A DNA stretch of 64,000 nt, from assembly GCA_030704615.1 (NCBI GenBank), contig CM060731.1, positions 54,932,001 through 54,996,000 of the forward strand, given 5' to 3'. Position 1 is the first letter of the stretch, and each line of letters opens with the position of its first letter. The notes beneath the pieces are model-generated. The model saw only the letters and a list, made by a program, of their open reading frames with translations, was not told where the DNA came from and made no database searches. Shown in pieces: positions 23,811-62,550 of the stretch. The stretch comes from Takakia lepidozioides. Its lineage: Eukaryota > Plantae > Bryophyta. A program made the position numbers and the translations under genes.

Positions 23811-26800
23811 TGTCGGCCAGGTGTCGGCCTCTCCCCCCGAGACGACTTCATCTGGCCGGCCCGGATGGAAAAACGGCGCCGAATTTCCATCCGCGGGATG
23901 TTCTCTGTCGGCCAGGTGTCGGTCTCTCCCCCCGAGACGATTTCATCCGGCCGGCTCGAATGGAAAAATGGCGGCGAATTCCCATCCGGGGGATGTTCTT
24001 TGTCGGCCTTGTGTCGGCCTCTTCCCCCGAAACGACTTCACCCAACGGGCCTGGGATGGAAATTCCACGGCAAATTTCCATCCGGGGGATGTTCTCTGTC
24101 GGCCAGGTGTCGGCCTCTCCCCCCGAGACGACTTCATCAACGGGCCTCGGATGGAAATTCGGCGCTGAATTTCCATCCGAGGGATGTTCTCTGTCGGCCA
24201 GGTGTCGGCCTCTGCCCCGGAAACGACTTCATCCGGCCGGCTCGGATTGACAAACGGCGCCGAATTTCCATCCGGGGGATGATCTCAGTCGGCCAGGGGT
24301 CGGCCTCTCCCCCCGAGACGACTTCATCCAGTGGGCCTCGGATGGAAATTCGGCGCCGTTTTTCCGTCTGGGGGATGTTCTCTGATGGCCAGGTGTCGGC
24401 CTCTCCCCCCGAAACGACTTCATCCAAGGGGCCTCGGATGGAAATTCAACGCCGAATTTCCATCCGGGGGATGATCTCTGTCGGCCAGGTGTCGGCCTCT
24501 CCCTCCAAGACGACTTCATCCAACGGGCCTCGGATGGAAATTCCGAGCCGTTTTTCCATCTGGGGGATGTTCTCTGTCGACCAGGTGTCGGCCTTTCCCC
24601 CCGAGACGACTTCATCCGGCCGGCTTGGATGGAAAAACGGCGCCGAATTTCCATCCGGGGGATGATCTCAGTCGGCCAGGTGTCGGCCTCTCCCCCCGAG
24701 ACGACTTCATCCAACGGGCCTCGGATGGAAATTCGGCGCCGTTTTTCCATCCGAGGGATGTTCTTTGTCGGTCAGGTGTCGGCCTCTCCCCCCGAGATGA
24801 CTTCATCCGGCCGGCTCAAATGGAAAAACGGCGCCGAATTTCCATTCGGGGGATGATCTCAGTCGGCCAGGTGTTGGCCTCTCCCCCCGAGACGACTTCA
24901 TCCAACGGGCCTCGGATGGAAATTCGGCGACGTTTTTTCATCCGGGGGATGTTCTCTGTCGGCCAGGGGTTGGCCTCTGCCCCTGAGACGACTTCATCTG
25001 GCCGGCTCGGATGGAAAAACGGCGCAGAATTTCCATCCGGGGGATGATCTTAGTCGGCTAGGTGTCGGCTTCTCCCCCCGAGACGACTTCATCCAACGGG
25101 CCTCGGATGGAAATTCCGCGCCATTTTTCCATCCGGGGGAAGTTCTCTGTCGGCCAGGTGTCGGCCTCTCCCCCCGAGACGGCTTCATCCGGCCGGATCG
25201 GATGGAAAAACGGCGCCGAATTCCCATCCGGGGGTTGTTGTTTGTCGGCCATGTGTCGGCCTCTCCCCCGAGACGACTTCATCCAAGGGGCCTCGGATGG
25301 AAATTCGGCGCCGAATTTCCATCCGGGGGATGTTCTCTGTCGGCCAGGTGTCGGCCTCTCTCCCCGAGACGACTTCATCCAAGGGGCCTCGGATGGAAAA
25401 TCGGCGCCGTATTTCCGTCCGGGGGATGTTCTCTGTTGGCCAGGTGTCGGCCTTTCCCCCCGAGACGACTTCATCCGGCCGGCTCGGATGGAAAAACGGC
25501 ACCGTTTTTCCGTCCGGGGGATGTTCTCTGTCGGCCAGGTGTCGGCCTCTCCCCCTGAGACGACTTCATCCAACGGGCCTCGGATGGAAATTCGGCGCCG
25601 TTTTTCCGTCCGAGGGATGTTCTTTGTTGGCCAGGTGTCGGCCTCTCCCCCCGAGATGACTTCATCCGGCCGGCTCGGATGGAAAAACGGCGCCGAATTT
25701 CCATCCGGGGGATGATCTCAGTCGGCCAGGTGTCGGCCTCTCCCCCCGAGACGACTTCATCCAACGGGCCTCGGATGGAAATTCGGCGACGTTTTTCCAT
25801 CCGGGGGATGTTCTCTGTCGGCCAGGGGTTGGCCTCTGCCCCTGAGACGACTTCATCCGGCCGGCTCGGATGGAAAAACGGCGCAGAATTTCCATCCGGG
25901 GGATGATCTTAGTCGGCTAGGTGTCGGCTTCTCTCCCCGAGACGACTTCATCCAACGGGCCTCGGATGGAAATTCCGCGCCATTTTTCCATCCGGGGGAT
26001 GTTCTCTGTCGGCCAGGTGTCGGCCTCTCCCCCCGAGACGACTTCATCCGGCCGGCTCGGATGGAAAAACGGCGCCGAATTCCCATCCGGGGGTTGTTGT
26101 TTGTCGGCCATGTGTCGGCCTCTCCCCCCGAGACGACTTCATCCAACGGGCCTCGGATGGAAATTCGGCGCCGAATTTCCATCCGGGGGATGTTCTCTGT
26201 CGGCCAGGTGTCGGCCTCTCCCCCCAAGACGACTTCATCCAAGGGGCCTCGGATGGAAAATCGGCGCCGTATTTCCGTCCGGGGGATGTTCTCTGTTGGC
26301 CAGGTGTCGGCCTTTCCCCCCGAGACGACTTCATCCAACGGGCCTCGGATGGAAATTCGGAGCCGTTTTTCCGTCCGGGGGATGTTCTCTGTCGGCCAGG
26401 TGTCGGCCTCTCCCCCCGAGACGACTTCATCTGGCCGGCTCGGATGGAAAAACGTCGCCGAATTTCCATCCGAGGGATGATCTCAGTCGGCCAGGTGTCG
26501 GCCTCTCCCCCCGAGACGACTTCATCCAACGGGCCTTGGATGGAAATTCCGCGCCGTTTTTCCATCCGGGGGATGTTCTTTGTCGGCCAGGTGTCGGCCT
26601 CTCCCTCCGAGACGACTTCATCCGGCCGGCTCGGATGGAAAAACGGCGCCGAATTTCCATCGGGGGGATGTTCTCTGTCGGCCAGGTGGCGGCCTCAACC
26701 CCGAGACGACTTCATCCGGCCGGCTCGGATAGGAAAACGGTGGCGAATTTCCATCCGGGGGATGATCTCAGTCGGCCAGGTCTCGGCCTCTCCCCCCGAG

Positions 26801-27334
26801 ACGACTTCATCCAACGGGCCTCGGATGGAAATTCAGCGCCGTTTTCCATCCGGGGGATGTTCTCTGTCGGCCAGGTGTCGGCCTCTCCCCCCGGGACGCC
26901 TTCATCCGTCCGGCTCGGATGGAAAAACGGCGCCGTATTCCCATCCGGGGGATGTTCTTTGTCGGCCATGTGTCGGCCTCTCCCCCCGAGACGACTTCAT
27001 CCAACGGGCCTCGGATGGAATTTCGGCGCCGAATTTCCATCAGGGGGATGTTCTCTGTCGGCCAGGTGTCGGCCTCTCCCCCCGAGACGACTTCATCTGG
27101 CCGGCTCGGATGGAAAAACGGCGCCGAATTTCCATCCGGGGGATGATCTCAGTCGGCCAGGTGTCGGCCTCTCGCCCGAGACGACTTCATCCGGCCGGCT
27201 CGGATGGAAAAACGGCTCGGAATTTCCATCCGGGGGATGTTCTCTGTCGGCCAGGTGTCGGCCTTTTCCCCCGAGAGGACTTCATACAACGGGCCTCGTA
27301 TGGAAATTCCGTGCCGTTTTTCCATCCGGGGGAT
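23811..27334. repeat. Tandem array of about 37 monomers of 95-96 bp, each with a 32-bp palindrome
   Basis: Unit tgtcggccaggtgtcggcctctccccccgagacgacttcatcc-N8-cggatggaaa(aa/tt)cggcgccg(aa/tt)tttccatccgggggatgttctc; starts at 23811, 23906, 24001, 24097 and so on. Confidence 0.98.
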
Positions 27335-27561
27335 GAGGCTCCATATCCGCCTCCGTGAGGCCCAAACCTACAATAGCAGCTCTGCCCAACATCAGTGACT
27401 GAGCTCCCGAGTCCAACAAGACCCGCAGTGGCCGGTACCTCTTGCCTGCCGGTCCAGTCAAAGAGAAAATGTCATCCTGGTTGTCTAACAAGACAACTCC
27501 AGGTGTCACCATGGCGCGCTCAAAGGCTGGCTTAGCTGGCAGCTCTGTCAACCTGGCAGCT

Positions 27562-30500
27562 TGTCGCGGCCCTTTGCCTTGAGGGCAGGGGGTCGGGACA
27601 CACGAGGGGCTGCCCCTGTGGTGGGGGCAGTGGCAGCGATAGGTATGGGGGGGCTGAAGCACCCTTGAGTGCCCAAGGCACTCAGGGAAGCGGAGGCGCT
27701 CACTAGGTGGAGCCCGCACACCGGGTTGCGGTGGGGGTGGCTCCACAAGGGGTGGTGGTAGCTTAGCGGGACTTAGTGGGGGTGGCATATGACTCACCAT
27801 GGGGGCGGAGACCTCGTGGTAGGAGTCGTGGGGAGTCTTGGGACTCATCACGGTCCATAGGGGCCGTGGTGAGTGGGCCAAGACTCACCGCGACTCATCA
27901 CCGGGAGTCGAGGGTTTTCGTGGTGGTTCGCCATAAAATGGCATGGCTGGTTGTGAAACCCCCGCGGACAGCTACAGAAGTATATATAAGGGGAGTAGTG
28001 ACCCTGAGAACGGTGCAAGCCCGTTGGTGACCAAAAACTAGTGAGTAAGCGAGCGAGCCGGAAAGCGACCAAAGAGTGGGGAGCTGTTCTGGACTGCCAT
28101 CTACCAAAGGGAATTCCACCAGGCCCAAATAGGTGGAGGGTTTAGTGGGAAGCGAAGGGGGACCGTTATGTCCCGGTGAGCAGCCGAAGCTCCAAGTTGG
28201 CCCGGGGCCAGGTTGGAAGTCAGGCGCGCGCATCAAAGCGAGTAACTATGACTTGAAGGGGAGCTTACCGAAGTGAGGTGCGCGACATTTGGTATCAGAG
28301 CTTAGAGTTCAGTACGCGATCGTCCTTGGGATTGGCCTCATCATGGGGTCGGGCAAGCCAAAGCGAAAGTGGAACGGCCCAAAAGATGATGATCCTGGTG
28401 AGCCCGATGGGGGCGACGTGTCACCGAAGCGGCCGTTTGAGGAAGCGACGCAGGTTTCTGAAAACGAGGCCGCTCAAGAGCGGGAGGAATCCGAGGAGTC
28501 AGAGCCCGAGGAATCCGTGAGAGCTCCAACCGACCAAGAGATGCCTCCCATGCCGGCAGCCTTTTGGGAAGGGTTGTTGGCGCAGTTTGGCGGGACGTTG
28601 AAAGACGTGTTGAAGGCGGCTAATGCCACTTCCACTAAGGCAAAGTTTAAGGTGAAGCCTAAGGAGCCCGACACCTTCGAGGGCGTCCGAAATCGGAAGG
28701 CACTCAACACCTGGCTCCTGGAGCTAGAGCAGTACTTCCGGGCGGCCAAGTTGAGTGACGAGGATCGGGTGGAAGTGGCTCCCACCTATTTGAGGGGCTA
28801 TGCTCAACAATGGTGGCAGAAACGCCTTCACGACCGAGGTCCAAGTCCGGAAACTTTGAACTGGAGTGGGTTCAAGGAATTGATGAAGCGACAGTTTGTG
28901 CCCCTCAACGCGTCATGGCTTGCTCGGGACAAGATGAGGAATTTGAAGCAAACAGATGACATTCGGGGATATGTCCAGGCTTTCAATGTGCTGTTGCTCG
29001 AAGTCGCGGATATGGCGGAACCAGAAATGGTCTTCAACTTTGTGGCGGGTGGCCCCATGGGCCAGGCGGAAGTTGGAGGAGAAGCCACCTAAGACTTTGA
29101 ACGAGGCAATTGAGAGGGCTGAATGTTTTTCAGATGTCCCTAGGGGTGAAAGACAAGGCCGTACGGAGCTGAACCACAAGAAGACCCGGCGGGAAGGTGA
29201 CTCCTTCCGACCGGAAAAGAAGTGGGATAGGCCACGCGGCGACAACATCATGTGGAAATCGAAGGGAGAGCCATCACAAGTCAAGGCGGCACCCGGTGCT
29301 TCGAAAGGAAAAGCGGGTGGAGCGGCCTATGGCGGACAGAAGGCAACCTTTGATGGAGTGTGTTTCAATTGTGGGGAACCCAGGCACATGGCCAAGAAGT
29401 GCACGAAGCCCCCGCAATTGAACATGACTCGGGCGACCACAGAGCTGTCGGAAGATACCATCAGTCGCTTGGTGGAAGCGGTGGTCGCCAGGACTTGCAA
29501 GGTAGGCAAATATTCTTGTGAGTTGTATCAGGAAACTGGCGCATTGCGTAAAGGGAGTCACTTATTGTTCGTGGATGGGACAATATCCGGAACTAACGTG
29601 TCATTGTTGGTGGACACAGGAGTGTCGCACTCCTTCATGACACCGGCAACGGCACAAAAGCTAGGACTCCCGACAACTGACGTAGGGGCCTCTATTGAGG
29701 TGCGTTTTGCCAAAGGAGAACCGCAATTGGCGACAAGGTTGGCGTTCGATGTTCCTCTTCAACTGGGGAGTTGGGAGGGACGCGAAAACTTCACCGTCTG
29801 CGAGATCGATGGAGTGGATCTCATTTTGGGGATGATCTTTTTGAGCAAATCCGGAGCGGTCATAGATGGCCGCAAGAGGGTAGTCACGCTGCCATGTTGG
29901 AATGGTGGCGAGGTCTTACGAGTTTCGGAAACGCCCAAACCCGTGGGAGGGCGAATAAACCTTCTATCAGCAAGGGAGTGGGCCGTGGAGGAGGCACACA
30001 AGCCCCAGTTTTTGCTCTACATTAGAGAAGTGAAGGGAGAAGATGATGGAGAGCCGAGCCCAGATTGGATCAAGGGGATTTCGGAGAAATACCATGATGT
30101 GATGCCGGAGGATTTGCCAAGCGGCTTGCCACCGCGAAGAGGAGTTGACCACAAGATTGAGGTGATACCGGGATCGGAACCGCCTGCCAAGGCGCCCTAT
30201 CGGTTGAGCCACAGAGAGTTGGTCAAGCTGAAGACTCAGCTCAAAGATCTAATGTCAAAGGGGTACATCCGGCCGAGTAAGTCACCTTAAGGAGCCCCGG
30301 TGCTATTCGCAGACAAGAAGGATGGGACGCTGCGGATGTGTGTCGATTACAGGGCTTTGAATAAGGTGACTATTAAAAACCGGTACCCTTTGCCAAGGAT
30401 CGACGACCTTTTCGACCGGTTGGCAGGAACGAAGTATTTCAGCCGGGTCGACTTGCGCTCCGGCTATCATCAAATTCGGGTGGCGGAAGGAGATGAGGAG

Positions 30501-33500
30501 AAGACCGCGTGCAGGACAAGGTATGGTTCATATGAGTTCTTGGTGATGCCTTTTGGGCTCACCAATGCACCTGCAACCTTTAGCACGCTGATGAACAGCC
30601 TTTTTCAGGAGTGGTTGGATGACTTTGTGATCGTGTATATCGACGACATCTTGGTGTACTCGAAAACAAAGGAAGAGCACCTGGAGCACCTCAAAAGGGT
30701 GTTCCAAAAGTTGCGGGAAGGGAAGCTGTACGCCAAAGCTTCAAAGTGCGAATTCGGGGTCACGAAAGTGGAGTTCTTGGGGCATGTGATTACACAGGAT
30801 GGGATCAAAATGGATGACAGAAAGGTGAGGGCGATCTTGGACTGGGAGCCTCTGACTTCGGTCCCGGGAGTGCGATCCTTCCTAGGACTCGCCTCCTATT
30901 ACCGGAAGTATGTGAGAAATTTCGCCAAAATCGCGGGGCCGCTGTCAGACCTTCTGTGTAAATCTAAAGTCTGGGCATGGAACACCTTTTGTGGCCAAGC
31001 TTTTGCTGAATTGAAGCAGCGGATGGCGGAAGCTCCAGTCTTGAAAATCCCGGAGTTCGATCGTCCGTTCGAGATACATACAGATGCGTCGGACTTCGCG
31101 ATTGGGGTGTACTGATGCAAGATGAACGTCCAGTGGCTTACGAAAGTAAGAAACTGAATGAAGTGGAGCGACGGTGGCCGACGCATGAGAAAGAGATGAA
31201 GGCGGTGGTGCACTGTCTTGAGCTTTGGCGCCACTATGTTGGTTCCAACCCAGTGAAGGTGTTCACGGACAATGTCACGGTGAAGTATTTTGCCACGCAG
31301 CCCAAGTTGTCCCCAAAACAACTTAGGTGGCAAGATACTTTGGCGGTGTTCGACGTGGATATCCAGTACAAACCGGGACGAGACAACGTGGTGGCCGATG
31401 CTTTAAGTAGAAAGCAGCAGCTCTTGTTGGTGTACAAGGGCGAGACGGCGCTCCAAATGAAGATCCGAAAGGCTTGCCGGAAGGATGAGCTGGCGAAGTC
31501 CGTGATGCAGGACTTGAGGATGGGGGTTAAGTCGCAGTTCCACTTGCAAAATGGACTGCTCCGGTATAAGCAAAAGCGTCTCTACGTACCGAAGGGAGGG
31601 ATCAGAGATAGCCTCTTGAGAGAATGCCATGATAGCCCGCTTGCGGGCCACGGCGGAGCCACGCGCACTGCGGCACTCTTAAAGAAAGAGTATTTCTGGC
31701 CTAAACTGAGGGAGGAGGCGGAGGAGTATGTCAAGACATGCACCACATGCCAACAAAACCGGATCGAGTACAAAAAGCAAGCGGGGCTGTTACAACCCTT
31801 GCCGATTCCAGAGGGGACTTGGGAAAGCGTCTCGATGGATTTCATGACTGCTATGCCGCTGTCAAAAGGATTCGATGCAATCATGGTGGTGGTGGATAGG
31901 TTCAGTAAAATGGGCCATTTCATCCCCACCAAGGAGACGGCAACGGCGCAGGAGACAGGGCGACTTTACTTTGCCCACGTCTTAAAGCATCATGGAGTCC
32001 CGAAGGATATTGTTTCGAACCGCGATCCAAAGTTTACGAGTAAATTTTGGAGGGCACTTTGGAAGAAGATGGGGACGAGGCTGAAGATGAGCACCGCCTT
32101 CCGACCTACGACCGACGGCCAAACATAAAGGGTGAATTTCGTAGTGAAGCAGATCTTGCGGAATTACGTGTCGACAGACCAAACAGACTGGGTGGAACAC
32201 TTAGACGCGGCAGAGTTCTGTTATATTAACACAGAACACTCCGCAACGGGAGTTTCCCCTTTCGTATTGGTCTATGGAAAAGCACCTCTGGTGCCGACAA
32301 GTTGGGCCGCCCAGGATGTTGAGGAACCCGCAGTAGCGGTGGTACTGGAAGAACGCGAGCGTTTGTTGAAGCTCGCAAAGTACAACATTGCCAAAGCTAG
32401 GAAACGGTATGAAAGGCAGGCAAATCGGAAGCGGAGGGAAGTAAAGTTTGAGGCAGGCATGGAGGTCTGGTTGAACATCAAGAATTTCCGACTACCTCCG
32501 GAAGTGAGTCCGAAGTTCGTACCTCCGTATGCGGGACCCTTTCGCATTCGGAAGGTTATGAATGAGGATGTGTATGAATTGGAGCTGCCGGTAAACAGCA
32601 AGGTGCACCCAGTATTCCATGTCTCCCTTTTGAAGCCTTATTTCAAAGATGAAGCGCGTCCGAATCGGCATCAAGTGTTGCGTCCGCCACCTATGCTGTT
32701 GGATCATGAAAATGAACCTGAGTACGAGGTGGAGGCAATACTTAAGTCGAGGAGGTTCAAGAATCGAGAAACGGAATATCTCGTCAAATGGAAGGGCTAT
32801 CATCATGTGGAGGCATCTTGGGTGCGTGCCTCAGAAATGGGAAACGCATCCGAGGCGGTTGCAGCTTTCGAAGGGCGACCTCAAAAGTGGAAGAAGCGTT
32901 GATGGGGACATCAACCTTGGAGCGTGGGGGAGGAAATGCATGCTTAGCCCGGTTTAGCTAGCTTAGGAATCCGATTGCAAAAACTTGTATTCTACAAAAC
33001 GTGCTATAAATGAAACGGATTCCAAATGTTGTGCGTCCTATTTGTTTGGAATGGTGATGCATGGTATGGTTGGCTAGTGTGTAGAATGCATGCTAGCTTA
33101 TAAAAGTGGGAGAGGTAAATTGGGTTAATCGTGTGTTTGCGTAGTGCCGAAATCGGGTGACCCCCATCCAAGGGGCAAGGAAACTTGCGCCTTCTTTGGG
33201 AGTTCACGTGCTAGTGCGCACCTGGCGCGTGTGCGTACTATAACTGCGCTACCGAGGGGGTTGCCTTGTAGTGTGGGCTAACGCGGAAGCTACGTGCTTC
33301 CGTTCACGTACTATAATGTGTAGCCTCGGGACGAAGTCGTAGTGCGGCTTCGGCGTGTTCCCGTACCTCAGGCCAGCATTCCAAGGCGGACCCAATTGTA
33401 GTGATTGGGGCGCACGGTTGGTTCAAGGTTATCTTCCTAGTCAAAGAGGGTTCCAGGTGAACCCTTGCTCAAGGTGATGCCAAAAGCGGCATCATGAGCG

Positions 33501-48200: not shown

Positions 48201-51200
48201 AGCTGCTCGTTGGGGGACTTGGCTGCAACAGGGAAAATTAAACACTCACTATCAAAATCTTTGCAAATGGTCCTGTATGTCTTTGTCTCTTGATGCATCT
48301 GGGTTTGCTGGGGCATGCAGGTGCTTGAAAGAGATTTGGCAGTGTTTGGTTTCTTTTCAGCTTTAGGGAGAAGCACTCGTGCCTATCTGGCAGCTAAAGG
48401 TGTGAGTGATTCAGAAGAATCGCTTGCAAGCCTACTTAGGTCAGTGGCATTTCTTTGCATTTGTGGACTTGTAGCCTTTGCAGCATGTTCATAGAAAGAG
48501 ACAGACAGACAGAGAATAATTGCATTGTTCGAAAGGAAGAAAGACTCCCACTTCTCATGTTGCTTCACTAGATGTCAATCAGGAACTTTTTATCACATAC
48601 TGCTCTTGAACGCAGATAACATGCCTTGATGAGTCAGGCTGTCATTTTAGTTGGTCACATCTTGGCAAGACCGGGCTCCCTGCTGCAGGTACCTAGAAGG
48701 TGGGAGTGTTCTGTTTTACCCTCAGCTTGCAACTGTTTCCACATACCAGCTGTTTGTGGAGGTGAGTCTCAGTATTGACCTTGGTCTTTGAGGTCCTTCC
48801 AAAAATTTCTAAGGTTGCTTGTCAGAAAATTCTGGACATTTGTGTGGTTTGAGGGACAGTATAGAGGGTGTATTTTCTCAGCTGCTGAGTTGGGGTTTCA
48901 TGACAACCTAACACAGGATAACATCAGATGCCTCCCTGCCTTTACAGCTAAGCAGACCAAGCTGCATACACCACTTTCACATTGGTTGTGGGTATTTCAT
49001 CTGGTATTGTGATCTCCCAAGACCGGAGAAGAGTCTGTTAGTTGGGAATGATTTACACAATGTCACTTGTTGTTTAAGGCAGAGGTAAATGCTGTACCTG
49101 GTTACCTTGTCAGTAAGATCTGAGAGGAAACAAATTTGATTTGCAGGTGGTATGTGAGGAGATGGAGTGGCTGCCATTTTATCCAGGCATTCGACGAGCG
49201 GCAGCTCACGGGGAAAATGGCAGAATGAAGTCAGGGGTTAGTAAAGCTGAGAGAAGGATGATCATTGCTGCAGCACTCCAGACATGCTCTCTGTGGGTTA
49301 ATAGTTTTGTCCATCACAGCAGTTGGGTGCAGCAACAATCTGGCTTTCGGGCTGCCAAGTTTCTTTCAGTAAGGTTGGTTCCTATATACTTTTTTTAAAC
49401 TGATCTTTAGTGAATCAAGTACAGTGCTGGAATTGTCTATTTCTAGCCTGTTGTGAGAATGTGATGCGTAGAGGAAGTTGCAAACAGTGGGGACAAGGCT
49501 GGTCAGTTTCTGTTTTATAGTGAAATCATTTCTTGCTAAAGTTGTGATTTTTTTGTACATCAACAGTCAGCAACGGTTGGAAGAGTGCAACAAAACATAC
49601 AATATTATGAAGCGTAGTACAAAAGCTGATGGTCCCAGGTAAGTCAGCTTTCTGGTCGTTTTTGGTGAAGCAATGTTGCCAGGGAGCATTGGATTGCCAT
49701 ACAGGAGGAAAATGTATGCTTGCAGTGCTTTTCCTACAAGTACCGTCATAAAGGATGATACGCCTTTTTAAAGCTCTGTCAAGACAGTTGACCACATCTT
49801 TGCCTCGTCAACACACAACTTCTCCTTGTCTGGGCACAGGGACAGGGTAGGGGAAGTTGACAGCAAGTTGGATAGGCTGCTGTATCGGGATTTTCAAGAG
49901 AGAGCAGTGGTTGAGCAGACCAGTAGCAGTTGGGTGGACGATGGCATGTTGTGGAACTGGGATGTTCCTGTCACAAAATCAGAGGAGCTCACATCAGAAC
50001 GTATAGGCTTACAAGAGATGGAGCGGCAACTGAAGCTGTTTGATGAGGTTCTCTCTCTCTCTCTGTTTATCACTTGAATTTTTTCTCACTAGTTTCAGTT
50101 TCACTTCACATTGAACCCAATGTCCCACAATGTTGGAACCAACAGTACCAACCCCCTTTATGTACTAGTGTCTTTTTAAAGCCACAAATGTTTTTTTGTT
50201 CTTTCTGTCTAGATATTGATTTGCTTTCATGAGAGCTGCTTGTCAAGGACTCTATACATGTCCTTTCCTGTTGTTCTTTTGAAGTAATAATCTGCACATC
50301 CTCTAATTGATAACTGTCCTCTTGATGACTGTGGGCACTCTGGGTTTTTCGCCGCAGGAACTGCAGAGTGTTGAGATTGCATTGGGAAAACTTGAATTGT
50401 TGGTCAAAGACTCAGAAGCTTCAAGTTTAGTCTCTGGGAGGGAAAGACCTTCAACAGCTCGTGCTGACCTTGTGAGGATTCGGTTGCTCAAGAGAGAAGT
50501 AGAAGCGTTGGAGGCTTCGCTTGAACTCAAGGCTGTATTGAAGGAGGAAAGGGTGCTAAAGCAGCAGGTACTGTGTCTACCCCTCCCCTAAACTCTCTTC
50601 TTTTTTTGGAAGTGTTTTCCTGTACGGTTCTCTTTATGCAAGTTCCAGATAAGTGAGAACTGTTTACAGAAGTGAATGCAGCTTAACTAGGTCTCGCTTC
50701 TCTGTTTTTGTCTGATAGAATGAGCTGCAGCTTCTGCTGGTTTTAAATCATGTACACTCTGATTCCAGGTGGAGGAAGAGAGTAGAAGGTTGCAACAGCA
50801 GAGATCAGCCTCACAAAACCGTGACTTAGTGGGAGAAATCCAAGACCCAAACCAAGAACCCCAAAGCAGGTTTGGTAACTCTAGCTTGCTTGTCTTGCAC
50901 ATGGTCATATCAGATACATGTGAATCTCGTTGTGACAGAAACAAGATGACGAACTTGATGTTTTTGCTGTTACCTTTAGTGTTACCCCTGCTAGGAGTTT
51001 CAGCTTTGAATTTTCTGTCGTGGCAGGGAGACTCAGAGAGGGCTTGTTTATGACATCATACAGCCTGTTTAGGCACCATCAAACTGCCTCTACCCAAATC
51101 TGCCTGCATACCTTTGTCATATCCTATAGATGTAGGGTGTTCTAAGCGGCAATCAGATGCACACCAGCTAGATAGGCAGGTCGCAGAGAAAAGGTTTCCT

Positions 51201-54200
51201 CAGCACATCCTCCCATGGAAGCATTTCATTATGATTGTGTATGTATGAAAACAACAAATGCACACCCAGTCATCCAAGATCTGAAAGAACTTGAAGCGTT
51301 TAACTTTCCTTAGACTCTTGCCCTTAGTAGCAATCCCAGCAATAAAAGAAGGTGAAGTGGCCTCACCTGGATCCATCACCGCCAACCAACGAACCAACAG
51401 GTTAGTGATCCCTGTGGAACCCCAGGCTTCAACCACATCACACTTGTTATTGATGTCATCACTATAGTGTTGGAAACTAGACCTGTCCTCTACCTCCTAG
51501 TGATATTGACAGATAGCTTCTAGCACAAGCAGCAGTACAAAAACTGACAGCCTAAACCAACCAAAGAGTTAGTACTAACAAGAAGTGTCAGTCCTAACAA
51601 GAATGCTCCTTACTGCAAAAGAAAAGAACTTACAAAAGTAGATGCTGGACTTCTCCTCCTCCTCTCTCTGCAATCTACTAGGATAGCACATCCAAAATGC
51701 TAGAAGAAGTGCTGGGCATTGCCTCAGCCTTTCTCTTAAATCCTACATGAGTTCTCTAGAAACTTCTGGTGGCTGGAACCTTCTGGTAGAACTATCCCTA
51801 GCCGTCAAAAAACCCTAACAGAACCCTAGCTAACTAAATCTGAGCTGACTTCTAACACTCCCACTCAGCGAGGATTGAGGCTTAACCCAATCAGTTCCAT
51901 GCATCTAGAATGCTTTTCTTTGGATAGAGCCTTTGTGAGTGCATCAGCTGCCATGTCCTCAGTCCTACAGTAAACCAACTCAATCTCCAAACCAATCATT
52001 TCTCTAATGAAATGATGTTTGATATCTATGTGCTTGGTCCGGGCGTGATGAACAGGATTCTTGCTCAGCTCAATGCTGCTCCTGTTATCAGCATGCACTT
52101 TCGTTGGCTGTTCTTGACTGAAGCCAAGTTCACCAAGAAGCCTTCGAATCCAAATGGCTTCTTTAGCTGCATGAGTCAGAGCCATATACTCTGACTCAGT
52201 CGAGGATAGAGCAGTGGTCTGCTGTCTTTTGCTGCTCCAGCTCACAGCACCTCCACTCATTACAAAGCAGTAGGCAGATATGGATCTCCTCTCATCTGTG
52301 TCTCCTGCCCAATCTGCATCACTGTATCCTTCTAGTGATGCTCCAGTGTCCTGCTTGTTGTAAGTTAGACATGTATCCGCAGTCCCTTTCAAATATCTAA
52401 TCACCCTCTTGAGTGCTTTCCAATGCTGAGGTCCTGGGTTGTGCATGAACTTACTAAGCATTCCCACTGCATAGGCAATGTCTGGCCTGGTGCCAATCAT
52501 TGCATACATCAGAGATCCCATGGCTTGCTGATATGGAACCTTAGCCATTTCCTCAATCTCACTTGGAGATTTTGGCTCCATTTCCTTACTCAGCTTGCAG
52601 CCGGTTTCCAATGGTGTTGGTGCTGGTTTGCAGTCCTGCATACCAAACTTCGCAACAACATTCCTGACATACCTCTCTTGGCTCAACTTTATAGTTCTCG
52701 CCTTCCTGTCCCTCAGAATCTGAATTCCAAGTAGGTAGTTCACGGCTCCAAGATCAACCATCTCAAAGGTTTCACTCAAATCATGCTTCTGCCTGCGCAT
52801 GGTATCCTTGTTGTCGCTGATCAGTAGCAGGTCATCCACATATAGTGCTATTATCATGACACCTGATGTCATGTAGTAAATGCTCTGATCAGCTGTACTC
52901 CTTACAAAACCTTGGCCTGTCAAGTAGCTATTGATCTTCTCATACCATGTCCTCGATGCCTTTTTGAGTCCATATAACGATTTCTTGAGCCGACACACCT
53001 TATCACCTTCTTGGAAGCCTTCTGGTTGTTTCATGTAGATCTCCTCCTGGAGATCCCCATTCAAGAATGCAGTCTTCACGTCCATGTGTTCTATCTCCCA
53101 GTCATGCTTCGCTGCCAATGCCATGATGAGTTGTGAAGTGACATACTTCCAACTCAGTCTACTCTTACCATGAGTAGCCAATGCAGTTTCCACCATGTCA
53201 TAACTCTTTGGCAAGGTGCCAAACAAGGTCATGATCTGAAGTGATTCAGTCATGGGTTCTCCCGCATCAATTATCTCCAGAACGGAGGTGTTGGAGGTGT
53301 CAAGGCTATAGCCCTTGCACGGCACTCTGAGAACAGAAAGGGACGGGTAGCTCAGTGGTAGAGCACCCCACCGGTATGGGGGAGGTCCTAGGTTCAATCC
53401 CTAGCCTGACCATACGCCAGTGGTTTTCCAACATGGTATCAGAGCCAAGGTTGGGGCGGTGGTCAGAATGGGTGGGCATCAGCTTTAAGGGCTATGCCTT
53501 GAGGGGGAGTGTTGGAGGTGTCAAGGCTATAGCCCTTGCACGGCACTCTGAGAACAGAAAGGGACGGGTAGCTCAGTGGTAGAGCACCCCACCGGAATGG
53601 GGGAGGTCCTAGGTTCAATCCCTAGCCTGACCATACGCCAGTGGTTTTCCAACATATAGCAGGTCATACTAGCAGATGAGTGGTAAGGAGGTCAGCTATT
53701 TTAGCCAGCATTAGGCAGACGTTTCAGGCAGCAGCAAGCACTTATTTCAGTCCATGCTCCAGAGGGAGGGGGTGCTGGACTCCTCACACCCGTTTCCAGT
53801 AAGAAGGTATTACTGGAGCTATTTGCTCAAGCAAGTCCACGCGTAGTAGCCCTTAGCTTGCAATTGTATTCACACAATTAGAGTAGAGTAGTGAAGAGTT
53901 TACATGGAAAACCCCAATTAGTCATTCCATTTTCCCGTTTTCTTGTGGACAAATTTCTTAACAGAAAAATGGGACCAGGGCAATCCTTGAGTTGTGTTAT
54001 GAGGGACTTGGCCACATTCAGGAAAGAGAGAGAGAGAGAGAGAGAGGAAATGTACTCATAAGGCATTGTTTGCCTTGTGCTTGCGGCCATAGACCTCACT
54101 CCCAGTTTGGGCAGAACAAGAGGGAACAGACTCTGCCTTTGTGTAGTGGGACTTACATTGATACGAACAATTTGTTCAGGCTTTCCAGATTTCCCCTAAA

Positions 54201-57200
54201 AATCCCTTCACACAAGCATCAATCTGCTGTCAGTAATCTGTCCAGCAGGTAGACCCCAAGAGGGTCAGTGCCAGGGTTTTTTTTCTACTTTTCCAAAATC
54301 GCCACAAGGGCCACATGGAAATTCTATCCAGCACCCATGTGGCGAGAATAACAAGGTGGCAGGGTTAGAAAAGTGGCTATATAATAGGTGTCACATTTTA
54401 ACAGGTCCACGCAGGAAAAATCTGTCTCCTGATATTTAGCCACGGGCGCTTTCTGGCAATTTTTTTGATTTTGACTCCCATCATTCCTCTGTAATAATAG
54501 CTGACCCATTTTCCAGGTCGAAGCTGGCTATTTCTTGCCAGATTTAAAAACACTGGTCAGTGCTTCAGGCTCAGCCTCGAGGTTTGCAAGTTGGTGAACA
54601 GAGGTGCAGGGACTATGTTCTTGATAGTCCTGAAGAGGGTTGCTCTCTGACGAGAATACCATGGACATAAAACAATGGATATTGTCTTCAGGCCGGCCAC
54701 ACATCGGGCTTTGACAATATCCCTTTCCTCTCTACATCTGTTTTCTGTTCAAGTGAGTTAAAATTTCAGTCTAGTGCTGAGGGTAGGTAGGCCCTTCAGG
54801 CATCCTTAAGGTCCTCCTCACCCATGTCTGAAACAAGTTCAGGGAAGTTTTATGCCTATCTGCATTTGTTCGGACATTCTTCATGCTTCCGCCATGACCT
54901 TCGCTTCAGCCTTGTCTAGCAGGGACAGTTCTTCCTGCCTAATATTCAGGTATTTGAAAATTGCCTCTACCCTTCACCGTCAGAACTTAGCCTGTATAAC
55001 AGGATGGTCTTACTTCCAAGTAAGAAAAGAAAGAGATAGGGCTTGTCAAGAAAGGATCTGTCTATTCCAGACTAGATCTATATATGATGAAATACAGGTT
55101 TGCCTCCCATCTTAGACTTACCACAGGTAGGCAGATTGCATCATGATTTTTCATGAACTGCTATACTGCACCATGATAGAGAGTTGGAGATAGCTCTGTG
55201 CAATGCAGATTGCTGCTATGTCACCCAGCTTTGTATTGTAATTTGTTTTGTGGCAACACCTCTTTTAAGTCATCGCAAACTTACCACATATTTGGTTTGC
55301 AGGAAACTTGATCATAGAACTCAGAGCTTGGACAGCTTAGGTTCTGGACGTAAGCTCATGATAACTTACCTCATGTTGATGTATAGTGACTATGCACTAT
55401 ATCACTAACCTAGCACATGGAAATGCTTAAAAGTATAGGTTAGATCCCTGTAGAGGGGCAACCCGCTGTTATGGTTATTCTTTCCTGAGGTGCTCTCATA
55501 GGTAGTGAAACCATAACGCTGGTTGCTCACTGCAAGTAAACAGCCTTCTCATATTTTCGAAACAACTCCATATCCAGCACTGTGATTTCAGACAAGAACT
55601 CAAAATAGACGAGTGGCCTTCACCTGCACCAGTCCCAAAATCCACCACAAGCATATGATGTGGGTTGTTGAGGATGTATGAGGTGAATGGCAGGCCCTCT
55701 TACGTGCGTCAGCTCTCCAAAATGAACCAATAACTATCATGTCCAATCACAGACGAAGCCCACTTGGGTACAAACATGCAAGGGATTCAAATTGAGTAGA
55801 TCACTTGAGCCCAAAACCACCTGAAGTGTCCGTGTTGGAAGGGACTGAAATTTTCAACATGGGGGAAGGCATGATCACTGGTACCGCAGGAAGACAGTGC
55901 CTAGAAGATACCTTAAAGTCTCTTCTTGTGAGAAGATGTGACAGTTTCACTCTTTTGTCCTTTTCCTGTTTTTATGACAGTTGGTCATTGTTATACATGA
56001 GTTAGTTGATTTGTCTTGTTGTTGTTCTGGAAAGTGGTGGCTGTATGCCCTAGCTGTCATGTATGCAATAGTAGATGGTGGAAGACACAAAGCCGTAATT
56101 CCACTCTTTAAAGTAGAACAAAATAGACTATTGAAGTAGAAAAAGATATGTGCTGCTTTCAAAAGCGTTAGAGAATGTCCATTGTTTGCCGTAGCCTTGT
56201 GGCCATTGACCTCACGCCCAGTTTGAGCGGAACACAAAGGGACAGAAACTACCTTTGTAAAGGGCTAACGCCGGTAGTATGACTTACTGTGAAACAAACA
56301 ATAGATCCAAGTGTTCCAGATTACCTCTAGAAATCCCTTCACACAAACATCAATCTGCTGTGTGTGATTTGCCCAATACTCAGACCCCAAAAGTGCTTGG
56401 CTATTGGCTCAGCCTCGAGATTTTCGAAGTTGGCAAACAGAGGTAGAGGAACAATTCCCTTGATGGATTTGGAGAGGGTATCTCTCTGGTGAGAGTGCCC
56501 AGGGAATCAGAAAGTGGATATTGTCTTCAGGTTGCTCATACACCGGGCATTTGCAATCCCCCTTTCCTCTCTGCATCTGTTTGCTGTTCAAAGGTAGGCT
56601 TCCCACCCTGAGGTTAAATTTCAGTCGAGTGCTGAGAGTAGGTAGACCCTTTAGGTCATCCATGATGGCCTCACCCATTGCACAGACTGGAAACAAGTTC
56701 AGGGAAGTTTTCTGCCTTACTTCATTTTCATCAGACAATTTACTGGCAACAGACATGGCTTTTGACACTATAGCTTCTAAGGGAGATTCATCCAGAAGGG
56801 CAATCCTGCTTCCAAGATATACAGTCTATTAACTTAGGATATCTGGTATTAGTCATATAGAGTCCATTAACTTAGGATATCTATTATTAGTCATACTTTG
56901 CAGCTGACCCCACCATCTGACCATGAATTTATCTCATCGGGAGCTTAAGGCAGGAATGCCAAACTCACCCCGAACAGCCACATTAGCTGTTTTGGAGCAT
57001 GCTGACATGCACTCTTGAGCACCCCCACTTGAATGGATTCTAGAGATTGTACTCATAAGACGTTGTTTGCCGTAGCCTTGTGGCCATTGACCCGCCCAGT
57101 TTGAGCGGGAACAAAAGGGACAGAACCTACCTCTGTCAGGGGCTGACGTTGGTAGTGTCACTTACCATCATATATAGAATTAATCCGGGTTTCCAAATAT

Positions 57201-60200
57201 CCTCTAGAAATCCCTTCACACAAGCATCAATCTGCTGTGTGTGATTTGCCCAAAAACTAGGCCTCAGGAGGGCCTGGGCTTTTGGCTCAGCCTCGAGACT
57301 TTCAAAATTGTTAAACAGGGGAACAGGCACAATTCCCTTGATAGAGTTGAAGAGAGCGTCTCTTTGGTGAGAGAACCCCGGACAGTGTATCAGAAAGTGA
57401 ATACTGTCTTCAGATTGCCCACACAGCGGGCAATTGCACTCTCCCTTTCCTCTCTGCTTCTGTTTGCTGTTCAAAGGTAGGCTTCCTGCCCTGAGTTTAA
57501 ATTTCAGTCTAGTGCCGAGAGTGGGTAGACCCTTGAGGTCATCCAAGATGTCCTCCCCCATGTCACTGACTGGAAACAAGTTCAGGGAAGTTTTCTGCCT
57601 AACTTCATTTTCATCAGACAATCTCATGGCAACAGACATAGCTGAGGACACTACAGCCTCTAAGTCAGATTTATCCAGCTGGGTCAAGGCTTGCGGATCC
57701 AGGTCCAGGTCCTTGAGAACCTCTTCTACTCTCTTCTGCCAGGACTTAGCCTGTTTGACAGGGCGGTCCTGTTTCCAAGATATAGAGTCGATTAACTTAG
57801 GATATCTGGTGTTGGGCATATGTTGCAGCTGACCCCACCATCTGACCTTGAATTCATCTCGTCGGGAGCTTAAGGACGGAATGCCAAACTCACCCCGAAC
57901 AGCCACATTGGCTGTTTTGGAGCTTGCTGACATACACTCCTTAAGCACCCCTACTTGAATGGATTCTAGAGACTTAGCCTGGTTGGAGTTATCAACCCAT
58001 ATAGCAGATCCGTACTCCAAGGCAGGTCTAATAACGCGACAAAGCATGGTTTTCTTAACCTCAGAGTTGACCCCTCTGCAGTGGAAAAATTTAGTGAGCC
58101 CCAGAGCTTTGCCCTTGCCAGTTTGAACAACTTTCCGGATATGTGCATCCCAATTACATTTGGAGGAAAACTCAACGCCCAGGTAAGTGTAGGAAGGGAG
58201 GACCGGGATCTCTTGGCTACCCCACTGCCACTTAAGATCACTTCCTCCCTCTCCTCTGTCGTTGAATGCTACCACTGCACATTTGCTGACATTAGCCTCT
58301 AGCCCCCAAAGATAAAAGTATCTCTTCGCGGGCTGGTATGGTGGTATCACCCACCCTTAACCCAAATCCCTCACTTTCCACATCCTCGAGGAGTTGATTG
58401 ATGAAAACATTGAAGAGCAGAGGGGAGAGAGTACATCCTTGAGCTACACCTTGGTCTATGTCAAAGAAGTTGGACTTCTGTCCGTTAACAGTGAAACAGC
58501 TTTTGGTGTGGGCATACAAGTTGTGGACAACTCTCCACATCTTTCCCTTGATCCCACAAGACCAGAGGCGGAACCATAGGCCATCTCTCCACACTGTGTC
58601 ATAAGCCTTTTTGACATCTAGGAAAAAAACATAAGTGGGTTTCCCTTCTTTTTTCCTTCCCTGGATAATCTGGCTTAGAGTGAAGATATGATCCACACAG
58701 CCCTTTCGCCGAAAGCCAGCTTGGCCTTCGTGGAAACAACCTCTAGACTCCAGATCAACCTCGAGACGAGTACTTATAACTCTGCAGAATGTCTTGCCAA
58801 CAGCATTGAGGAGCGTGATGCCACGGTAGTTCCCGGTTCTTCTGTCACCCTTCTTGTATAGATTGACAATGACCCCCTGTCGCCAGCGAAAGGGGATCAT
58901 TTCAGTCTTCCAGATAAGGTTAAAGAGGAGAACTAGGGCCTCTATCATGGGATCGCCACCGTGCTTGATAAGCTCGTTGACAATACCATCAGGTCCACCA
59001 GCTTTATATCCATTTAAATGTTCAATTGCTTCCACAATCTCAGAAGAACTAATGGGAGCATTATAAGCCATTGAAATATACTCCAGTTCATCAGGGCTGT
59101 TTTGAATCATAGGAACAGTTTTTCCAACTGTGTCCCTCCATTCAGCAGAAGACCCCTCACTGTTAGACCTAGAAGTTCTGCCAAGGATACTGTAGTGAGT
59201 TTCAAAGGTTTTGACAATGTCAACCGATGAAGTCACCACTGCACCTTTAGTAGTCTTCAGAGCTTGTACTTGCTGACCGTTTTTCGGCTTGTACAAACGT
59301 TGAAGGGCCAACCAGAATTTCTTATCATTACCACCATGGTGGTTTGAGTTTATTTCACTGTATAACTTGTCCCAGTATAATTTCTTCTGAGACCTAACAA
59401 GCTGATTGATATCTTTACGGAGCTGGTAGTACCTCGCCCACAATTCTCTGTTGGTTTCCAAATTGCAGCACTCTTTATAGAGGGCTCGTCTCTCAGCTAT
59501 CTTGAGTTTAATCTCATTGGTCCACAAATTAACTGCTCTACCGCAGACAATTAGTTTCCTCCCAATGATCTTGTCAGCCATGGAGGAAACGAAACTCTCC
59601 CAAGAGTCGTCACCTCTTGTCCTGTTATTCAAGGTCAAAAGCTGAAGCTCTTCTAGACAGTTAATTAACCGTCTGCCATTAGAATTCAGCTCGTCCTCAC
59701 CAAAAGGTCCAATGATATCGTCCTGATGGATCCCTTTGCCCACCCGGGCATTGAAGCCCCCCAATAGTACCACCTGACCTTTGGCAAGGAACGAAGCACA
59801 GTCCAGCTTTACATCTTCGAAGGCTTTGTCTGCGTCAGCACTAAGGGTCCCCTCTGTGGGCATGTAAACACAACCCACAAAGAGGTCCTTTGTACTCATG
59901 CCGCCCTTCAGATTCAGTTTTAGCCAGATACTATGCTCGTACCTCAAACCCTTGTTGATAATTTCACAATTGTCAAACAAGAAATCACGGACAAAGAATC
60001 CAACCCCTTTTTGACCGCGTTTGGCAGAGGCTGCCTTGAGAGTACACATCTTACCTGCCCATTTATAACCATTGACATCTCCAACCAGTTTATCCGACAT
60101 TTCCCATGTTTCTTGCCCAGCACAGATATGAATATCATTAGTCCGAAGAACTTGTCCCACTTCGAGTTGTTTCCTTTGGTTGGTCAACCCTGAGAAGTTG

Positions 60201-62550
60201 AAACAGCCGCAAGCCAGCCCCTTGCATGTGAATTGTTTGTCGTCTAGGTAGCTTGTGATTGCTCCTGGACGGCCAACCGTTCTGCAAAGGGGGGACAGTT
60301 ACCCCATGTGTAGATTTTGCTCGTCTTGTGTAAACTTTGAGAATTGGTAAACCATTCAGGGTACCAAATCTTTCAGTTACACGACGCACAGGCTCCACAC
60401 ACATAGGGGCAGATTGTCCGTCAGACTGCTTGGGGACAATTACCCCGTGTATAGATTTTGCTCGTCTTGTGTAGACTTTGAGGATTGGTAAACCATTTAG
60501 AGTACCAAATCCTTCAGTTACACGACGTTCAGGCTCTGCACAATTAGGGACAGATTGTCCATCTGACGGCTTGGGGACAATTACCCCGTGTATAGAATTT
60601 GTTCGTCTTGTGTAAACCTTGAGGATTGGTAAATGGACTCTAGAGACTTAGCCGGGTTGGACCTATCAACCCACACTTCAGAGGCATTGGAGAATGTACT
60701 CATAAGACGTTGTTTGCTGTAGCCTTGTGGCCATTGACCCCGTGCCCAGTTTGAGCAGAACACAAAGGGACAGAAAACTACCTTTGTCAGGGGCTGATGC
60801 TGGTAGTATGAGTAACCTTGAAATAGACAATTTATCCGAGTTTTCCAGATATCCTCTAGAAATCCCTTCACACAAGCATCAATCTGCTCTGTGTCATTTG
60901 CCCGATAACTAGACCCCGAAAGGGCCTGGGCTTTTGGCTCAGCCTCGAGATTTTCGAAGTTGGTAAACAGAGGAGAGAGATGCAATAGATTGTACTCATA
61001 AGACGTTGTTTGCCGTAGCCTTGTGGCCATTGACCCTGCGCCCAGTTTGAGCGGGAACAAAAGGGACAGAACCTACCTCTCTCAGGGGCTGACGTTGGTA
61101 GTAAGACTTACCTTCATATATAAAATTAATCCGGGTTTTCCAGATATTCTCTAGAAATCCCTTCACACAAGCATCAATCTGCTGTGTGTGATTTGCCCAA
61201 AAACTAGGCCTCAGGAGGGCCTGGGCTTTTGGCTCAGCCTCGAGACTTTCAAAGTTGGTAAACAGGGGTACAGGCACAATTCCCTTGATAGATTTGAAGA
61301 GAGCGTCTCTTTGGTGAGAGAACCCCGGACAGTGTATCAGAAAATGAATACTGTCTTCAGATTGCCCACACAACGGGCAATTGCACTCTCCCTTTCCTCT
61401 CTGCTTCTGTTTGCTGTTCGAAGGTAGGCTTCCTGCCCTGAGTTTAAATTTCAGTCTAGTGCCGAGAGTGGGTAGACCCTTGAGGTCATCCAAGATGTCC
61501 TCCCCCATGTCACTGACTGGAAACAAGTTCAGGGAAGTTTTCTGCCTAACTTCATTTTCATCAGACAATCTCATGGCAACAGAAGAGATGCAATAGAGAG
61601 GGGGTGAGATTGTACTCATAAGACGTTGTTTGCCGTAGCCTTGTGGCCATTGACCCCGCGCCCAGTTTGAGCGGGAACAAATGGGACAGAACCTACCTTT
61701 GTCAGGGGCTGACGTTGGTAGTAAGACTTACCTTCATATAAAGAATTAATCCGGGTTTTCCAGATATCCTCTAGAAATCCCTTCACACAAGCATCAATCT
61801 GCTGTGTGTGATAGAGAGGGGGTGAGAGAACAGAACAAAGAAGAAAGGTGACTGAGACTGTTCGGACCCAGGGTGGTTGGTAATACATGTTTGGGTGCTG
61901 AGTGTGCCGCAGTTTATAAGTTGTGTCATGGTTGCGTGTGCATAGGGGTCGTCTGGAACAAGAAGGTGCTGCAAACTGGGGTAGACGATTGATGAGGTTT
62001 ATGTTTCCCTTCTCTGATCTTAGGAAGGGGAGGGAAGACAACGACTCAATTGTGACCTCCAGTTCAGCTGTATGACACCTGTTCCCATTTTGCATCTATG
62101 TTTTGCAGGTTTCTCCTGTTAACGAGTTAATTGTGTTCTTTCGCACTACAGAAATATGTATATCTTTTGTGAAGTCGTGGTCCTGCAGGAAAAGTGAAGT
62201 TACATATGTGCAATTGATATCACATCAAGTTCAGAGTTTCTGCTTGGATATAAAATTATTCTTCTGCTCAGCATATGCAAAGAATTAAATTATATTTTCG
62301 TGAGATTTGTTGAACCCCTTTAACCACTAAGCTGTTCAGGATCTTCGTAGATATATATGCACCAGTACCAAAATTGTGAGGTGTGCACATACAGGATGAT
62401 GGTCTGTATGATGAGAAGAACGCAGAGCTAGTGCGAGAGGATGCAGCTGGAGTTTCGAAGGAAGTGGAGACATTTGAGCTCCTGCGGGGTGAATTGGCTG
62501 CACTTGAATCTCGGCTCAGGCAATGTGCTGGCCAAACAACCTCTGACAGG
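45260..62550 (+). CDS. Plant LETM1-like (At3g11560-type) protein, multi-exon, continues beyond the window
   Basis: Phase-compatible exons 45260-45730, 46407-46498, 46910-47074, 47472-47859, 48321-48439, 48689-48761, 49147-49373, 49567-49638, 49840-50047, 50358-50567, 50769-50869, then possibly 55303-55349, and 62395-62550. Motifs LVQALHDAAR, WLGIDKNAWMK.L.YQA, VLERDLAVFGFF.ALGRST, VVCEEMEWLPFY, FELLRGEL..LE.R. Exon structure between 50.9 and 62.4 kb is unresolved. Confidence 0.9.
51468..53288 (-). mobile_element. Copia LTR retrotransposon, internally deleted (gag fragment fused to RT-RNase H, PPT, 390-bp 3' LTR)
   Basis: HMDVKTAFLNG, LYVDDLL, GYSDADWAG, ARTKHIDIKHHF; PPT TGAGTGGGAG; LTR 51857-51468 (TGTTAG...TTTCCAACA); gag-like piece 53130-53288. 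Confidence 0.93.
53341..53412 (+). tRNA. tRNA-like element in the TRIM 5' LTR (anticodon position reads GGT); probably not a translating tRNA
   Basis: A box TAGCTCAGTGG, B box GGTTCAATCCC, D stem GCTC/GAGC, T stem CTAGG/CCTAG, acceptor GGACGGG/CCTGACC with one mismatch; C instead of U at position 33. Confidence 0.7.
53562..53633 (+). tRNA. tRNA-like element in the TRIM 3' LTR (anticodon position reads GGA)
   Basis: Identical to the first copy except one base in the anticodon loop. Confidence 0.7.
54050..57046 (-). mobile_element. Older degenerate fragments of the LINE family (about 54050-54240, 54560-55020, 56180-57046)
   Basis: Similarity to the 3' end and late ORF2 of the 57-60 kb LINE. 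Confidence 0.75.
57047..60631 (-). mobile_element. LINE with APE endonuclease, RT and C-terminal CCHC; 5' truncated, internally deleted; 15-bp TSD
   Basis: QETW, CVYMP, G.FNARVG, NYRGITLL, FLDVKKAYD, GVAQGCTLSPLLF, YTYLG, RPALEYGS, CPLC....DSIHFLIHC; TSD aatgga(t/c)tctagaga at 57032-57046 and 60632-60646. Confidence 0.92.
60292..60631. repeat. About 2.4 copies of a 140-bp tandem repeat at the LINE 5' side
   Basis: ggggaca.ttacccc.tgt.taga.tttg.tcgtcttgtgta starts at about 60292, 60432 and 60573. Confidence 0.9.
60694..61810 (-). mobile_element. Three 5'-truncated LINE copies (60694-60975, 60990-61583, 61610-61810)
   Basis: Shared 3' end; TSDs agagatgcaataga (60976/61584) and atagagagggggtgaga (61593/61811). 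Confidence 0.92.

Follow-up and report, generated by a model that had tools for sequence, protein, structure and literature searches.

A 64,000-nt stretch of the genome of the bryophyte Takakia lepidozioides (GenBank assembly GCA_030704615.1, contig CM060731.1, positions 54,932,001 to 54,996,000 of the forward strand; hereafter the window) carries at positions 53289–53654 a non-coding long terminal repeat (LTR) retrotransposon of 366 bp with the layout of a terminal-repeat retrotransposon in miniature (TRIM). By its structure it very probably belongs to Helenus, the TRIMs with tRNA-derived sequence in their LTRs (Kojima 2024, PMC10886601), of which Helenus-1_SMo from Selaginella moellendorffii serves here as the plant reference. 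Two direct repeats of 145 bp (BLAST E ~2e-71), each starting with TGTTGGA and ending with TCCAACA (TG...CA), enclose an internal part of 76 bp. The primer-binding site (PBS) TGGTATCAGAGC abuts the CA of the 5' LTR and is complementary to plant initiator tRNA-Met at its 3' end, and the purine run GAGGGGGAG, a polypurine tract (PPT), adjoins the 3' LTR. The open reading frames (ORFs) over the internal part are all short and extend through the LTRs, and none is credible. The features of the element are as follows, with boundary evidence from contigs of public sequencing runs that are described below.

53289–53433, plus strand: 5' LTR, a 145-bp direct repeat; another copy's contig switches to other DNA precisely at this first position
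53289–53340, plus strand: U3-like part upstream of the tRNA-like segment, delimited from the sequence; not alignable to its 32-nt counterpart in Helenus-1_SMo
53341–53412, plus strand: tRNA-like segment of the 5' LTR (ARAGORN; Rfam tRNA, 54.6 bits)
53424–53427, plus strand: TTTT, located 6 nt before the end of the LTR and part of its terminus TTTCCAACA
53434–53509, plus strand: internal part, 76 bp, non-coding, with the PBS TGGTATCAGAGC at 53434–53445 and the PPT GAGGGGGAG at 53501–53509
53510–53654, plus strand: 3' LTR, with a tRNA-like segment at 53562–53633 and TTTT at 53645–53648; a contig of another copy (run X7) departs exactly after 53654

The two LTRs differ at a single base (T at 53375, A at 53596), which is the third anticodon base of the tRNA-like segment in the Rfam alignment (GGT vs GGA). 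One difference in 145 bp corresponds, at commonly used plant substitution rates, to a nominal age of ~0.27–0.7 million years with a very wide interval, and the insertion is young. An original prediction, made by a model from the sequence alone, had described the 366-bp element with its two 145-bp LTRs, PBS and PPT, its lack of coding capacity, the single LTR difference in the anticodon and the youth of the insertion; direct-repeat search and inspection of the sequence bore out each of these statements.

The 72-nt tRNA-like segment in each LTR was found by both ARAGORN and Rfam. In Rfam, scanned to E 1, it matched the full tRNA model (positions 1–71) with 54.6 bits (E 1.2e-10), against a cut-off of 29 bits for this family. 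An A box (TAGCTCAGTGG, 53348–53358) and a B box (GGTTCAATCCC, 53391–53401) are present, and a TTTT run follows the segment in both LTRs, as had been predicted. The cloverleaf that was predicted along with them held in part: the segment fits the Rfam tRNA model over its full length, but two pairs are non-standard (A3/A70 and A31/G39), position 33 is C in place of the universal U, and ARAGORN gives the segment no isotype. The segment is thus a degenerate tRNA that fits the tRNA model imperfectly. Upstream of it, a CTATAG motif sits in a small palindrome within the U3-like part, ~30 nt before the tRNA-like start.

Contigs from four public runs, one of them labelled plant metagenome, were mapped onto positions 50800–54800 of the window and showed that the family at 53289–53654 is dispersed and multi-copy. 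Summed contig depth over the element reached 46,000–73,000 (run X2) vs ~50–66 for adjacent single-copy contigs, which is ~700–1200 times the single-copy level; as summed depth is no copy number, we read it as 'hundreds or more'. The ends of the LTRs are confirmed, because contigs of other copies diverge from the window sequence exactly at 53289 and right after 53654; many copies with other flanks, for which the original prediction had suggested a search, are thus present in the contigs. The tRNA-like segment is covered by contigs of other copies in four runs, and the possibility, raised in the same prediction, that it is a one-off insertion in this copy is contradicted by these contigs and by its presence in Helenus-1_SMo. 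At 53413, 53480, 53485 and 53560, none of which lies in a tRNA-like segment, this copy departs from the majority letter of the family. BLAST found no second copy within the 64-kb window. Scans of metagenome contigs with an LTR-end pattern and with a pattern conserved with Helenus-1_SMo gave no match, nor did a protein search with a 75-aa ORF running through the element, used as a proxy for other copies.

Helenus, Cassandra and Ajax together make up TRIMp3, the TRIMs containing an RNA polymerase III (Pol III) promoter (Kojima 2024, PMC10886601). Helenus elements are defined by two LTRs, a PBS, a PPT and a tRNA-like sequence with boxes A (TRGCY...YGG) and B (GGTTC); they have been described from fungi (rusts and others), from six animal phyla and from a single plant, S. 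moellendorffii, and the plant and fungal members make 5-bp target-site duplications (PMC10886601). Helenus-1_SMo has an LTR of 120 bp, an internal part of 85 bp and 5-bp duplications (consensus in Data S1, PMC10886601), and the later papers searched only cite this work, without adding a plant member. The Takakia element combines two short LTRs and a short non-coding internal part with the boxes TAGCTCAGTGG and GGTTCAATCCC inside an Rfam tRNA match in both LTRs, a PBS next to the 5' LTR and a PPT next to the 3' LTR, and we regard its membership in Helenus as highly probable. The original prediction had called it a tRNA-based counterpart of Cassandra and had stated that no described family was like it. 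The structural reading was right, this being a TRIM whose LTRs each contain a tRNA-derived segment; the second statement was wrong, since the type was published in 2024 as Helenus within TRIMp3 (PMC10886601) and the element is related to Helenus-1_SMo. What is new is a plant family within a published element type, not a new kind of element.

Other known systems share single traits with the element. Cassandra is likewise a miniature LTR element with a small-RNA gene, internal Pol III promoter and T-run in the LTR, but it captured 5S rRNA with a type 1 promoter, whereas the segment here derives from a tRNA with a type 2 promoter; the Rfam scan (E up to 1) found no 5S rRNA in the element, only tRNA, and membership in Cassandra was rejected for this lack of 5S rRNA-derived sequence in the LTR. 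Short interspersed nuclear elements (SINEs) of the tRNA-derived type (SINE2) have a similar tRNA-derived head with A and B boxes and have been proposed as the likely source of the Helenus tRNA segment (Kojima 2024, PMC10886601). They lack LTRs, PBS and PPT and are moved by long interspersed nuclear elements (LINEs); the element has LTRs, PBS and PPT, and identity with a SINE was rejected on that ground. Fungal Helenus elements of the Pucciniales are proposed to be mobilised by Ty1/copia, and most of their families, unlike the Takakia element, prime from the anticodon loop.

The relationship to Helenus-1_SMo was assessed by aligning the element by eye against the published consensus (Data S1, PMC10886601). 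The tRNA-like segments, both 72 nt long, align without gaps and are identical at 56 of 72 positions (~78%). Identity is concentrated towards both ends of the segment: of its first 27 positions, the stretch with the A box, 25 match (with a 22-nt identical block), and of the last 30, 26 match (with the whole B box identical), whereas the anticodon arm has diverged and shows a 2-nt shift. Some stem changes preserve pairing: G-C to A-T and T-G to T-A in the T stem, and T-A to C-G in the anticodon stem. Both elements have the LTR end TTTTCCAACA, the LTR start TGTT and a PPT ending in GGGGAG; the PBS matches at 11 of 12 positions and the first 20 internal bases at 17. They differ in the lengths of the LTR (145 bp here vs 120 bp) and internal part (76 bp here vs 85 bp), and their U3 parts (52 nt here vs 32 nt) are not alignable, the TATA-like motif being absent from Helenus-1_SMo. 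The original prediction had proposed to compare the conservation of the boxes with that of the rest of the LTR; in this comparison of two families, conservation is limited to the A and B boxes and the ends. The comparison does not reach the level used to delimit the Helenus-1_SMo family, identity of at least ~80% over most of the LTR and internal part. Because ~78% identity is confined to the tRNA-like part, the U3 parts are unalignable and the lengths differ, the sequences indicate a separate family of the same lineage as Helenus-1_SMo.

We put the probability at about 85% that the element is a Helenus-type TRIM of the Helenus-1_SMo lineage, forming a family separate from it. We propose the following mechanism for it. 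The A and B boxes would recruit TFIIIC and Pol III, with transcription starting near 53341. In some cases transcription would end at the 5'-LTR TTTT and yield an RNA of ~87 nt; other transcripts would read past this run, end at the 3'-LTR TTTT and measure ~308 nt, laid out as R-U5-PBS-internal-PPT-U3-R (U3 ~52, R ~87 and U5 ~6 nt). Partial read-through of the 5'-LTR TTTT would be needed because the template RNA must span the element from the 5' LTR to the 3' LTR. The ~308-nt RNA would then be packaged, reverse-transcribed from initiator tRNA-Met and integrated by Ty1/copia proteins. That Pol III makes the template RNA is a step towards which our analysis leans only slightly. The original prediction had likewise proposed Pol III transcription from a type-2 promoter, a reasonable suggestion that is also put forward in Kojima 2024 (PMC10886601) and has a precedent in Cassandra.

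Several points weigh against this account. A Pol III terminator in the 5' LTR would have to be leaky, and the TTTT belongs to the terminus TTTCCAACA common to the element and an adjacent copia element, so that it may be an integrase recognition sequence and not a terminator. The CTATAG motif could equally serve RNA polymerase II (Pol II). In energy terms another structure (minimum free energy −24.5 kcal/mol) is favoured over the cloverleaf, which reaches −16.0 kcal/mol when restricted to standard pairs, and the folding z-score is +0.3 to +0.5 against shuffles; we do not take the failure of energy folding to recover the cloverleaf as evidence against tRNA ancestry. Runs X5 and X7, provisionally taken for RNA, extend over single-copy intergenic DNA as well and may be DNA. 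The element lacks its own 5-bp duplication, the five bases on either side being unlike (GGAGG left, TATAG right). Finally, the comparison with Helenus-1_SMo was made by eye, and the copia element lacks its 5' LTR and PBS at this locus.

A competing explanation, which we consider less likely, accepts a Helenus-type TRIM but has its template RNA made by Pol II or by read-through from a neighbouring gene, the tRNA-like segment being kept for another role such as TFIIIC binding or chromatin effects, RNA 3'-end processing or packaging. The position of CTATAG ~30 nt upstream of the tRNA-like start would suit Pol II, but the U3 is unalignable and the TATA-like motif missing in Helenus-1_SMo. The 5'-LTR TTTT would halt Pol III ahead of the PBS, and the stem differences from Helenus-1_SMo that keep pairing suggest that the shape of the RNA is important, which it need not be for a DNA promoter; yet it is the A and B boxes that form the best-conserved blocks between the two plant families. 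Kojima 2024 (PMC10886601) describes Pol III use by Helenus as inferred and not validated, and reports transcripts made from the Pol III promoter of Cassandra, an analogous element. An ordinary TRIM with a one-off pickup of a tRNA gene or SINE in this copy, or a duplicated pair of ordinary tRNA genes, is extremely improbable and was rejected: the segment is in both LTRs, in other copies and in the Selaginella family, and it combines C33, two broken pairs and an anticodon that differs between the LTRs with the lack of an ARAGORN isotype.

The Helenus element directly adjoins, on its left and on the opposite strand, an internally deleted Ty1/copia remnant, with which it is enclosed by a 5-bp duplication.

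51463–51467, no strand: TATAG, left-hand member of the 5-bp duplication around the composite of copia remnant and Helenus
51468–51853, minus strand: Ty1/copia 3' LTR, 386 bp, TGTTAGAAG...TTTCCAACA; contigs from three runs begin their match exactly at 51468 with other flanks
51854–51862, minus strand: copia PPT GAGTGGGAG, preceding the 3' LTR
51865–53123, minus strand: copia reverse transcriptase (RT)/RNase H frame with truncated RT N-terminus (Pfam RVT_2, E 2e-51, profile 63–243)
53124–53288, minus strand: copia gag fragment, 165 bp, fused in frame to RT (weak Pfam Retrotran_gag_2, E 7e-4, profile 115–161); abuts the Helenus 5' LTR
53655–53659, no strand: TATAG, right-hand member of the same 5-bp duplication

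This remnant has lost protease, integrase and the start of RT. The boundaries at 51468 and 53123 are fixed, because contigs of other copia copies start or stop there exactly; all of them cease matching at 53123, and the contig of another copy matches 53121–53233 and then continues differently leftward. The RT–RNase H sequence groups with Streptophyta, its closest relatives in the protein collection having at most 58% identity. The last nine LTR bases (TTTCCAACA) are common to the copia and Helenus LTRs, both start with TGTT[A/G]GA, and the PPTs are similar. Because of this shared end, similar LTR start and similar PPT, we propose the adjoining copia family as a candidate for the autonomous partner of the element, with even odds of being the right one. 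A Ty3/gypsy element at ~28–33 kb of the window has the same PBS as the Helenus copy and a different LTR end. A copia candidate fits the dependence on Ty1/copia that was proposed for fungal Helenus (Kojima 2024, PMC10886601); the same work indicates no partner for Cassandra and names none for plant Helenus. As a separate observation, only 55 nt (51859–51913) lie between the end of pol and the PPT here vs ~900 nt in another copia copy (2.5-kb contig, run X7), which reflects either a second deletion here or an insertion in the other copy.

The copia remnant (minus strand) and the Helenus element (plus strand) form a composite of 2187 bp (51468–53654) with TATAG on both sides, a match with a chance of ~1 in 1000. 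Neither a second copia copy nor an empty target site was found in the 64-kb window. Two origins, which we rate about equally likely, can be envisaged. One, to which we give a little less than an even chance, is nesting followed by loss: copia inserted at TATAG, its gag then received Helenus in opposite orientation, and the 5' part of copia was lost by a deletion running between the Helenus end TTCCAACA and the outer end of the copia 5' LTR TTCTAACA. Plant genomes commonly show both nested insertions and microhomology deletions, the two sequences match at 7 of 8 bases with the elements in opposite orientation, and copia carries an unrelated internal deletion at 53123/53124. Nesting requires, on the other side, that both end points of the deletion coincide exactly with element ends, and there is no remnant of the copia 5' LTR and no second GGAGG. 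The other origin, put forward tentatively, is that the composite entered the genome as one chimeric complementary DNA (cDNA). Copia minus-strand DNA, with its natural 5' end at 51468, would have passed directly from RT to gag and from there switched to the end of a full Helenus cDNA, and the product, with the U5 ends of copia and Helenus both ending in TTTCCAACA, would have been inserted by copia integrase.

Two further observations concern the edges of the composite. A 7-nt repeat, GGAGGTG, occurs at the gag/Helenus junction (53284–53290 and 53293–53299, 2 nt apart) and may be due to chance, target preference or a joining event of which it is a trace. The left flank (51308–51467) is itself a repeat, matched from 51308 by many contigs at ~91% identity, at least one of which diverges near 51460.

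Elsewhere in the window, a repeat of ~215–250 bp occurs six times at 70–74% identity (54033–54264, 56180–56393, 57048–57272, 60693–60924, 60969–61219 and 61595–61805). Its core at 54150–54283 has the highest summed contig depth of the mapped stretch (~266,000 vs ~60 for single-copy sequence), and the copy at 57048–57272 overlaps the 3' end of an ORF (57136–58350) downstream of a LINE reverse-transcriptase ORF; the repeat may be a very abundant LINE tail or a SINE. The LINE (non-LTR) retrotransposon itself (57136–60187, minus strand) comprises a 631-aa ORF with Pfam RVT_1 followed by a 404-aa ORF with a Cys/His motif. The Ty3/gypsy element (~27900–32900, plus strand) encodes a zinc knuckle, aspartic protease, RNase H and integrase, and its initiator-Met PBS lies at 28290, after the LTR end ...GCGACA and a 2-nt spacer. 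An exon-like ORF at 19092–19826 (minus strand) with MutS domains I and II (Pfam E 1e-16) is a fragment of a host DNA mismatch-repair gene. Positions 24000–28000, with a G+C content of 0.61 vs 0.44–0.52 around them and long overlapping ORFs on both strands, are probably a satellite.

Helenus is thus an abundant, recently active family in a second plant genome, where previously one plant family had been described (S. moellendorffii), and the promoter boxes and stem-preserving changes common to the two plant families point to an old, conserved lineage. Each such element adds two tRNA-like hits to a genome, and copies will be miscalled as tRNA genes, so that they should be masked in annotation. 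The copia remnant at the locus provides a concrete candidate for the autonomous partner of plant Helenus. If the composite did arise as a chimeric cDNA, it would count as physical evidence for a single particle and a single integrase used in common by Helenus and this copia family, and would name the autonomous partner of plant Helenus, the first for any plant TRIM with a Pol III promoter.

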